Origin: Macrostomum lignano
Lineage: Eukaryota
Direction of reading: 5' to 3'
DNA length: 64,000 bases
NCBI GenBank assembly: GCA_002269645.1
Contig: NIVC01001526.1
Location: 124,001 to 188,000 of the forward strand
The position numbers and the translations under genes were made by a program. Positions 49,001 through 52,000 of the stretch are shown here, in pieces. The notes beneath the pieces are model-generated. The model did no database searches and was not told where the DNA came from. It worked only from the letters and a program-made list of their open reading frames with translations. The number at the start of each line of letters is the position of its first letter. The stretch's first letter is position 1.

Positions 49001-52000
49001 TAATATTTACTATTCATAAGGCTAAACATCTGCAGATAAAAAACCGTGCTGCAGTGACAGTTTTTATAGTAGTAATAGCAAGCCATTTTACGTCATATGT
49101 TTATTATATAAAACACTGATGGTTTTTTTTACCAGCAGTCAACAAGAATAGTGGTGAAGTTGTCTGAATTCCTTTAAATTTAATTAAAAGCTAACCTTGT
49201 TAAACAAGCTAGTTTACTGGATTTAATTTTTCTGCATTAAAACTTGTTTCATTTTTATTAAAATAGATCAAATCATCTTGAAATATTTTTATTAGAATAT
49301 TAAGTACGTCTGGTATAAAAATGGCTTGTTATTTCTAAAAACTAGCTACAACTCAAAGCGTCCATAGATAAACAAACCTACGAGTTCAAAAATTTCTTTA
49401 TGCTTTACTTTAAAAAGTCCTTTCTTACGACATTTTAACTATAAATACAAATAAGCTTCATTATTTTTACATATCTTTTTCAATTCGATATCTCGTACAT
49501 TCACATAGCAGAAGCTCTCAGCACGTACCATACCAAGCAGCCTGCTCGCCCTGCACCTCAATGGCCAGGCCGAAATCGGCCAGTTTCACAGCGGCACCTT
49601 TGGCCTTGCTGGCCAGTAGTAGATTCTCTGGCTAAAAGTTTTTCGTTTTATTTTTATACATCTTATAGTGAGGCTAACTAAAACAAGTGAAACGCGGGAC
49701 AGGGAAAGTTAGCAAGCAAAAAAACAGCATCAAAGAGTCTGTTAGGCGAATTTTATGCGATTTGAAATCAAGTAGCGCCTTATTAACACTAAAAGGATGA
49801 AATACACAGGAAAAATATCACTGATTGATTTTTCGAACATCAATTTAATTCTTTTTTTAGATTTTTGCCCATGGCAAATATGATATAAAGAACAATTGGC
49901 CACCAAAAAAATTAATAATTTAAAAATGAAAATAGAACATGAGCAATGCAACAACGCATTAGTGGTATATTTTTGTAAAAAACAATGTCGTTATTTTTGT
50001 CAGCGCGAAAAATTACTGTGCATTAATCAGCTTTTTTTCGGACATAAGGAACATTAACTCTATTTTTAAATAGCTCAGCTGGTACTGTACTAAGCTAGTA
50101 GTTCACACTACTCAAGCATCATCCAATTTAAAGTCTATTGGGAGACTACAGAAAAAGATAAGGGAAATTCAAACTAACATGTGTTAGTTCGGCTGTGTAT
50201 CTCATTTCCAAATGAGAAAGATTTTTATACTCTTTCCAACCCAAGTTAGAGAAAGACCAGTAAAGAAGATATTTAGTTATAAATAAATGCAAGAGGAAAG
50301 AAGCAAACGCCGTGTGAAAATAAAACTAGGAAAGGGAAATGCAAGACAAAAGCTTATAGCCAAGAAATATTAGGCACTGCGTGCATATATATAAATAATT
50401 GAGTAGTTATTGTATTATATGTACATCGATTAAATGCCCATGAGATGCATAGTTAGATGGATAGTAGAGTGTAGACACACAGAGTACATTAATAAACAGG
50501 ACCGTGTGATTATGACTCGGCTGTGTACAATTGTATCATTAATATTTGACATGCTTATTGAAGTTATAATCACTTTAAAACCTCGCAAACTTTATTATTA
50601 CACTCCAGTAATAGCAATAGAAATTTGATTCTAAATAGTCGCTATAGTAACCAATTATTCAAAATATCATATACTAAATATTTTCTAAAGTTATACAATT
50701 GGGTGACGAAAGTTATTTATTTATAAGTGGATTATTCGATTTTTTTCACGTTAGTCCTTATATACGTACTTTATAACAGGACGTGGGATGTTTGACGCTT
50801 ATCTTTAAAAAGTTCGGCCCCATTCCATTCTCTCCTAGCTAACTCTTCCATTTCTTTACCTGGAGGCGTGGGATGGATGAAGCTTATCTAAGGAGCGTAC
50901 ACTAGTCAGTGACTCTAAATCCACCCAAAATATCATTTCCATACCAGCCGTCGTATAAATGCTTTATATTCATATATACTGATGTGGGTTGAGTAATGCC
51001 TATTGGGTTACTAGTTTTCAAACTTTCTGTTTCCCTGCGTTTCTTTGTCATCTCTTACGATTAAAACGTAAGCGATCGTTTGATCCAAATTATTTGGATC
51101 TTTGAAAATTTACCATTTATTATTAAATCTTCATTTTTTCTGGGCACTAGCTGGCAACAAATTGTGTCGAAGTTTTCTACTAAAAACCTTTTTAAGTTTT
51201 TTATTACTAGGCATGACTGCATCTTCAAATTGATATTTAGCTTTCATACATATTTGATATGTATTTATTTTCAACTTAACCCTCTATCTTAAACCAATAC
51301 AATTTTAGTGAGCACTAGTTAATAATTATGCTAGCTGTATTCCCTAGCTGCTTGATTTAGAAAAGAAAATCAGTACGCATATAAGCAACGCACCAAACCA
51401 ATCGTTAGCCAAATCCGGTTGTAATTCGATGGCCAGACCAAAGTCTGCCAATTTTACAGCGGCGCCTTTTGTCTTGCTTGATAGCAGCAGATTCTCTGGC
51501 TATACGAGTGTATACAAGAATTTTTATGCTTTGTTTAAATGTTTTAACATTTTTGACGTGGTTTTTAAGAACCTCTAATTGTCTTGGATGTAAAGAACTT
51601 GCAATTAAATCTCCATTTTTCGATTCTGCATCGTGAGTATACTTTAGGACCTTAAAAAGCTACCGCAATCAGACCCAGTTCATAAAAAAATAGACCAGAC
51701 TAGAACACCCGGTCTTTAATAAGCAACTAAATCCAATCTTTAATTAGCTATCTTGATTCTTTAATCAGAATAGTTGCCATTATTGAGTTGCAATCCAATT
51801 GCAAGTCAGTCAATAGTCAGACAAATTAGCCAATAGAGACCAAAGCTCTTAAAATTTTGCAAGTTAAAAAAATCAATATACGAGTACAAAGTTGAAAAAA
51901 CACAGCCTTCAACACTTTCCAGCACAATTATTCGCTCAAAAACCTTAGTTTCTACTAATGAATAGCAGAGTGTACGAACATCTTGTAAAAGTAGCATCCG

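Follow-up and report, generated by a model that had tools for sequence, protein, structure and literature searches.

Diversity among CaMKII proteins is usually ascribed to the variable linker, with the catalytic core treated as invariant. In other kinases, the JNK genes (MAPK8/9/10; exons 6a and 6b) and the p38-alpha gene (MAPK14; CSBP1 and CSBP2) contain mutually exclusive homologous exons of the catalytic domain, and the resulting isoforms reportedly differ in substrate or partner interaction. The closest case within CaMKII is vertebrate CAMK2D, in which one or the other of two versions of exon 6 (6A/6B, also called 6v1/6v2) is incorporated, never both (bioRxiv 10.1101/721589). Exon 6B was found in about 10% of the CAMK2D transcripts of the mouse olfactory bulb (PMC12060085). 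A preliminary description of the DNA analyzed here had correctly placed this duplication in the HRDLK exon: CAMK2D duplicates exon 6 (73 nt, encoding HRDLK) and not exon 7 (103 nt, encoding PENLLL...AWF). Here we describe a CaMKII gene of the flatworm Macrostomum lignano that carries two copies of the exon homologous to vertebrate exon 7. The gene lies on the minus strand of a 64,000-nucleotide stretch of contig NIVC01001526.1 (assembly Mlig_3_7, GCA_002269645.1; positions 124,001 to 188,000; hereafter the window, whose own numbering is used throughout). We conclude, with a probability of roughly 0.7, that a lineage-specific tandem duplication of this exon generated two copies, A and B, that are used in a mutually exclusive manner, and that the resulting activation-segment isoforms would differ from one another and could co-assemble.

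The two homologous exons, A followed by B, are situated between the exon that ends with HRDLK (e5) and the exon that encodes GTPGYLSPE (e7). Exon A has the acceptor ...cgtatag/CC and the donor G/gtgcgt, and exon B has the acceptor ...cttttag/CC and the donor G/gtacgt. Their phases are identical (start phase 0, end phase 1), with exon A encoding 35 residues and exon B encoding 34 residues, each followed by a split Gly codon. A tblastn comparison of A with B gave E = 1e-14 within the ~20-kb locus, a similarity far above chance. Over the first 25 codons, 12 codons differ only synonymously and two carry replacements (S/A and T/A); by the Nei-Gojobori method this corresponds to 14 synonymous and 2 non-synonymous differences, or proportions of synonymous (pS) and non-synonymous (pN) differences of 0.70 and 0.036. 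Because the length of each exon is 1 mod 3, inclusion of both exons or skipping of both leads to a premature stop. Joint inclusion results in a stop at codon 194, which lies inside exon B (window 49560), and skipping of both results in a stop at codon 164, which lies in exon 8 (window 47919). Thus, a productive mRNA must join e5 to exactly one of the two exons and then continue to e7. When we rebuilt the exons on the minus strand, the coordinates, lengths, phases and peptides that the preliminary description had assigned to A and B were all reproduced, as was its claim that including both or neither would break the frame. Our recount of the codon differences also gave exactly its 12 synonymous and 2 replacement changes, and the four splice junctions that it had named (52952 to 51499, 52952 to 49631, 51394 to 48120 and 49529 to 48120) coincide with the ends of A and B and of the flanking exons (52952 and 48120).

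The rebuilt kinase and regulatory exons (e1 to e11) and the hub-domain exons, all given in window numbering, are arranged as follows:

57158-57106, minus strand: e1, which starts at the start codon (57158)
56086-55932, minus strand: e2, rebuilt exon
55349-55295, minus strand: e3, rebuilt exon
55200-55135, minus strand: e4, rebuilt exon
53024-52952, minus strand: e5, constitutive, 73 nt, ends with HRDLK; present in a single copy, homologous to vertebrate exon 6 and the upstream splice partner of A and B
51499-51394, minus strand: e6a, exon A, 106 nt; the derived copy, with one added codon, a Gly to Pro change and the donor GTGCGT
51393-49632, minus strand: intron between A and B, 1762 nt; comparison with the paralog revealed no conserved element in it
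49631-49529, minus strand: e6b, exon B, 103 nt; the copy of ancestral type, which is homologous to vertebrate exon 7 and has the donor GTACGT
48120-48037, minus strand: e7, constitutive, 84 nt, G-FAGTPGY...; the downstream splice partner of A and B, which encodes the P+1 loop
47922-47828, minus strand: e8, rebuilt exon
47712-47590, minus strand: e9, rebuilt exon
47086-47003, minus strand: e10, which together with e11 encodes the autoinhibitory/calmodulin-binding segment
46768-46726, minus strand: e11, which together with e10 encodes the autoinhibitory/calmodulin-binding segment
41254-40041, minus strand: hub-domain exons (PF08332 association domain)

The coding sequence extends from 57158 to a stop codon at about 40020, and the gene corresponds to GenBank locus BOX15_Mlig004461g1 on NIVC01001526.1 (100% identity, 19,501 nt). 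Its predicted product contains every part that is expected of CaMKII, namely the kinase domain, the T286-type site, the calmodulin-binding segment and the hub, and on this basis the gene is identified as CaMKII. The Ser/Thr kinase motifs HRDLKPEN, DFG and (T)PGYLSPE are present in the translation, and the best match among solved structures was human CaMKII gamma (2v7o, E = 1e-176), with which the RQET site of the T286 type and the calmodulin-binding segment align residue for residue. Pfam domain PF00069 is recorded for the M. lignano CaMKII proteins P0121 and P0123, and the hub domain PF08332 is recorded for P0121, P0123 and P0124. We compared the exon sizes with those of the human CAMK2 exon sequences of Sloutsky et al. 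(bioRxiv 10.1101/721589). The sizes in the window, 155 (= 95 + 60), 55, 66, 73, 103, 84, 95, 123, 84 and 43 nt, match those of human exons 2+3 to 12, from which it follows that e5 corresponds to vertebrate exon 6 (HRDLK) and that e6a and e6b both correspond to vertebrate exon 7 (PENLLL...DFGLAIE...AWF). A candidate third copy or relic in intron 4 (window ~54346-54317; tblastn E = 0.03) was rejected as a chance match; it sits upstream of e5 and has no flanking similarity, donor or blastn match. The introns also contain tandem arrays, with ~14 copies of a 22-mer in intron 2 (55531-55829) and ~38 copies of a 27-mer in intron 4 (53261-54290). The copy numbers of both arrays differ between the window locus and its homeolog.

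Of the several CaMKII loci of M. lignano, three were compared: the window locus (L003), its homeolog (L002) and an older paralog (L001), in which the two exons are designated A' and B'. L002 and L003 are ~94.5% identical in nucleotide sequence, introns included, and the constitutive exons e2-e11 of L001 and L003 differ with a pS of 0.66 (synonymous divergence, dS, ~1.6) and a pN of 0.020. In all three loci A precedes B between e5 and e7, the exons are 106 and 103 nt long and are followed by the donors GTGCGT and GTACGT, and the HRDLK exon is present in a single copy. In the region of the pair, only e5, A, B and e7 align between L001 and L003; the introns do not. For this comparison pS was 0.84 and pN 0.107 in exon A, and pS was 0.47 and pN 0.013 in exon B. 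Between L002 and L003 both exons are intact and have accumulated no non-synonymous changes. Since pN is far below pS in both copies while the introns no longer align, these values show purifying selection on A and B since before the gene duplication that separated L001 from L003, and they bear out the earlier proposal of an old duplication with selection on both copies. The replacement rate of exon A is ~5-fold that of the rest of the kinase core.

The two copies differ in how closely they resemble the exon of other animals. Only 1-4 residues separate exon B from the corresponding mollusc, annelid and human exon, compared with 8-10 residues for exon A in each case, which identifies B as ancestral and A as derived. 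The derived characters common to A and A' are Thr10, the Leu, the Gln-Pro-Asp sequence, the added codon and the GTGCGT donor. We also observed that GC content at third codon positions (GC3) in the alternative exons is well above that of the window copy in L001 (~0.85 versus 0.46-0.62), a gap that indicates differing compositional environments of the paralogs.

Deposited transcript models were used to examine whether each exon is incorporated into mRNA. The NIVC00000000 annotation was derived from genome-guided RNA-seq assembly (StringTie/TACO combined with a mapped de novo transcriptome) rather than from ab initio prediction (PMC5730564). Each of the five RNA-seq-derived GenBank CaMKII models, one per locus, contains exactly one of the two exons. 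Exon A is present in PAA82550.1 (Mlig024299g1, the homeologous locus L002), exon B in PAA66834.1, which is the model of the window locus (Mlig004461g1), and exon A' in PAA70243.1, PAA65261.1 and PAA66584.1 (gene ids Mlig005291g1, Mlig004924g1 and Mlig000566g3; paralog 2). Thus, the A-only and B-only mRNAs that had been anticipated are both represented among these models, although by different loci.

The models also bear on whether exon A is a functional exon at all. It could be a non-functional relic or pseudo-exon, with the models that contain it being annotation artefacts, as exon A has no counterpart in the other sampled animals and departs from them at a usually conserved Gly. We consider this very improbable, because in each of three loci exon A retains an open frame, an unchanged length of 106 nt and undamaged splice sites. 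It also stands out as an exon-like island amid introns that do not align, its pN (0.107) is well below its pS (0.84), and four of the five models derived from RNA contain it as A or A'.

The finding of a single GenBank model per locus, with one exon type in each, would also be expected if the gene copies had divided the labor without regulated splicing, such that L002 and paralog 2 constitutively use A and the window locus constitutively uses B while the other exon decays. Decay is difficult to reconcile with the intact state of both exons, free of non-synonymous changes, in both homeologs. Similarly, B' is tightly conserved in paralog 2 (pN 0.013 over a dS of ~1.6) although it is missing from all three paralog-2 models, so B' is presumably expressed and selected. 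Furthermore, TACO was run with --isoform-frac 0.75, a setting that keeps only near-dominant isoforms (PMC5730564); finding a single model per locus is thus to be expected and is no proof that each locus uses one exon only. For these reasons a division of labor among gene copies appears quite unlikely, and mutually exclusive use of the two exons remains our preferred interpretation. It follows that PAA82550.1 and PAA66834.1 would represent alternative isoforms rather than simply the output of separate genes.

Three UniRef models (A0A1I8GVS1, A0A1I8GSY4 and A0A1I8GC06; P0122, P0357 and P0126) fuse A to B by using an internal AG 4 nt into exon B (CCAG/AG), such that 106 + 99 nt restore the frame and the DFG segment is duplicated. 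Taken at face value, these deposited models would describe in-frame tandem inclusion, yielding a kinase with a duplicated 34-residue DFG segment. However, the annotation that produced the fused models is older and prediction-based, the downstream part of one model (P0126) is clearly garbled, and tandem inclusion was found in none of the RNA-based models. Moreover, a second beta7-beta8-DFG-beta9 unit does not fit the kinase fold. Such a product is exceedingly improbable, and the fused models are probably prediction artefacts that should be split into two isoforms. The presence of two homologous exons at the locus explains why two DFG segments were joined in these older M. lignano models.

We next consider what the exchange would do to the protein. 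The catalytic residues and DFGLAIE are identical in A and B, and the swap alters the residues after beta9. Exon B keeps the ancestral loop VQGEQAAW[Y/F]. The loop of exon A, LQPD-xxxx-WF, is one residue longer and contains Pro in place of the usual Gly (Gly166). CaMKII does not need activation-segment phosphorylation, and the tip of the segment is stabilized by a conserved hydrophobic cluster consisting of F172, I161, V164 and A170 in the numbering of the delta isoform (Rellos et al. 2010, PMC2910593). Besides adding one residue, exon A changes V164 to Leu and, in L002 and L003, A170 to Asp. The A loop would thus be predicted to alter the hydrophobic cluster that stabilizes the tip of the unphosphorylated segment, and the activation segments of the two isoforms would be expected to differ in conformation or dynamics, with consequences for catalytic output or for docking of substrates or the regulatory segment. 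As the hub domain is shared, A and B isoforms could co-assemble in one holoenzyme. Leu-initial 10-residue loops are present in CaMKII-like proteins elsewhere. The proteins with 'LQPP...' and other 10-11-residue loops (P0273 and others) are ~70% identical overall to the flatworm protein and do not come from relatives; these longer loops show only that a longer loop is compatible with the fold.

It could be argued that alternative splicing is real but that the two proteins are equivalent, the pair being kept for RNA-level control of dosage through unproductive transcripts and nonsense-mediated decay, or simply by drift. This would accommodate the identity of all catalytic residues, the variability of the loop after DFGLAIE across animal CaMKIIs and the ~5-fold faster evolution of exon A relative to the rest of the core. 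However, both A and A' have kept LQPD, the added residue and WF across a divergence of dS 1.6 or more, and in both exons pN is much lower than pS. If the copies were equivalent, loss of one of them would be expected, as the single-copy state of relatives suggests. We therefore consider equivalence of the proteins unlikely, and favor isoforms with distinct activation segments.

In the proposed mechanism, the pre-mRNA would be spliced from e5 to either A or B and then to e7, and transcripts that include both exons or skip both would be removed by nonsense-mediated decay. With 1762 nt between A and B, the intron is too long for steric exclusion. A search for competing RNA pairing identified only AT-rich inverted repeats at chance level. 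The donors of A and B both have C at position +4, which elsewhere in this part of the gene occurs only in e9, and the polypyrimidine tract of exon B is the weakest in the gene (35% pyrimidine); both features fit regulated exons. A 15-nt match (87%) between exon A and intron 5 (I19) was not considered significant.

Inspection of other animals indicated how widely the pair is distributed. The CaMKII loci of Schistosoma mansoni and of the tapeworm Rodentolepis nana contain one copy each of these exons, and those of the snail Biomphalaria glabrata and the annelid Dimorphilus gyrociliatus contain a single PENLLL exon. As the pair is absent in the sampled flatworms Schistosoma and Rodentolepis, it is not a general flatworm feature. 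Lack of conservation in relatives had been named beforehand as an outcome that would count against the pair; the exons are kept among the M. lignano paralogs but are missing from Schistosoma and Rodentolepis. A profile search with two A-type segments recovered no further A-type sequences from a database that apparently contains no other Macrostomum. An 89-residue query centered on exon A likewise recovered no A-type loop, but it also missed P0121, which is 100% identical, and is thus not a valid negative. In all three protein searches, the matches listed were at most ~1.75 times the length of the query. Searches of the literature on CaMKII in Macrostomum, on mutually exclusive exons of CaMKII and on CaMKII exon duplication revealed no description of the pair. 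GenBank already contains a protein for each isoform (PAA82550.1 and PAA66834.1), although without describing the two as a mutually exclusive pair. From these data we conclude that the pair is a genuine, lineage-specific and previously undescribed case of a common splicing device, restricted as far as sampled.

Duplication of the preceding exon, and annotated partial copies of this one, were observed in lophotrochozoans. In both B. glabrata (3302-3376 and 5361-5435 of the locus analyzed, L005) and D. gyrociliatus (3816-3890 and 4677-4751 of L006), the 73-nt HRDLK exon occurs twice in tandem, each time with splice sites. The alternative copy in the snail and the annelid reads SRCIQQ[VI]LEG..., and RefSeq isoforms of Haliotis, Physella, Octopus, Pinctada and Solemya carry one or the other HRDLK copy. 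Since both copies are 73 nt long and have splice sites, the reading frame enforces their exclusivity. The vertebrate literature may thus considerably understate the age of the exon-6 pair or how often it has arisen. With respect to the PENLLL exon, isoform X3 of Gigantopelta aegis (P0125) contains an in-frame partial copy of 25 residues (PENLILASKAGSPAVKLADFDLDCE) directly upstream of the full exon, and two Haliotis proteins (P0195 and P0203) contain 9-residue partial copies, PENLLLPSK and PENQLLSSK, at the same position. An independent duplication of this exon in gastropods may have left these partial copies behind as relics or cryptic exons.

Several observations weigh against our interpretation. 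Exon usage was judged from deposited transcript-derived models, and reads multi-map between the near-identical L002 and L003. The A/B pair is absent from the loci of Schistosoma mansoni, Rodentolepis nana, Dimorphilus and Biomphalaria. The nucleotide identity between A' and B' of L001 (83% over the first 84 nt) exceeds that between A and A' (77%). We would attribute this likeness to the elevated GC3 that A' and B' have in common (0.86 and 0.85), and there may also have been some gene conversion in the 5' part of the L001 pair. With respect to splicing, a comparison of L001 with L003 (blastn-short, E<=1) identified no intronic conservation that could represent docking or selector elements of the Dscam type, although elements shorter than ~15 nt could escape this search, and removal of the unproductive transcripts by nonsense-mediated decay is an assumption of the mechanism. 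At the protein level, the loop after DFGLAIE belongs to the more variable parts of animal CaMKIIs, such that the biochemical difference between isoforms could be small. AlphaFold2 models of both full-length isoforms, which were built from a 36-sequence alignment, were too poor to be used (mean predicted local distance difference test scores of 51 and 47, with the kinase C-lobe below 50). Finally, mutually exclusive exons of the kinase core are already known in CaMKII from CAMK2D 6v1/6v2, which lessens the surprise.

As the pair is confined to a single lineage, its importance is moderate. Variation of the DFG/activation segment that is natural and under selection shows which parts of an unphosphorylated segment can change. 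Considered alongside the exon-6 pairs of vertebrates, molluscs and annelids, the Macrostomum pair suggests that exon duplication has diversified the kinase core on more than one occasion. A broader and more speculative proposal, which we put forward only tentatively and regard as doubtful, is that the CaMKII core has repeatedly evolved switchable modules (exon 6 in vertebrates, molluscs and annelids; exon 7 in Macrostomum), and that the flatworm swap re-shapes the tip of the segment, such that co-assembled kinases of different activity or docking would allow the holoenzyme to be tuned by splicing. M. lignano is competent for transgenesis (PMC5730564), and thus exon-specific reporters and deletions are feasible.

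The surrounding DNA is AT-rich and repeat-rich. A 4.8-kb (GAGAG)n purine tract occupies window positions 16884-21640, with GC skew of up to 0.97 and AT skew of up to 0.93. Long tandem arrays are located at 1154-1549, 4719-6611, 7437-11226, 12289-12891, 14717-15545, 22439-24059, 25121-27616 and 62165-64000; their periods range from 4 to 66 nt and include a 38-mer (99 copies), a 44-mer (56 copies) and a 34-mer (54 copies). About one quarter of the window is satellite-like, which fits the 15% simple and tandem repeats reported for the M. lignano genome.

With respect to known systems, the Macrostomum pair most resembles CAMK2D 6A/6B in that both consist of tandem, homologous and frame-incompatible exons inside the CaMKII kinase domain. 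The two pairs differ in position. The CAMK2D pair is the adjoining upstream 73-nt exon (SHCIQQILE...HRDLK), which encodes helix E and the catalytic loop, whereas the Macrostomum pair is the exon of the DFG motif and activation segment. Because M. lignano has one HRDLK copy, its pair must have originated independently of the CAMK2D pair. The copies differ in character as well, since the vertebrate 6v2 peptide is the same as exon 6 of the alpha and beta genes, whereas flatworm exon A is unlike any other sampled CaMKII exon. The lophotrochozoan HRDLK pair is also a tandem exon pair of the kinase core, in this case in invertebrate CaMKII, but it occupies the position of the vertebrate pair and is accompanied in the snail and the annelid by a single PENLLL...AWF exon. 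The JNK and p38 pairs belong to another kinase family, lie in the C-lobe after the activation segment, are vertebrate-wide and do not involve an oligomeric holoenzyme. In all other respects the Macrostomum pair is like generic tandem-duplicated exons whose exclusivity is enforced by the reading frame and nonsense-mediated decay, as its members are adjoining, have near-equal lengths that are not multiples of three, share the same phases and have weak or non-consensus splice signals. Relative to such pairs, only the protein segment that is swapped and the lineage in which this occurs are new.

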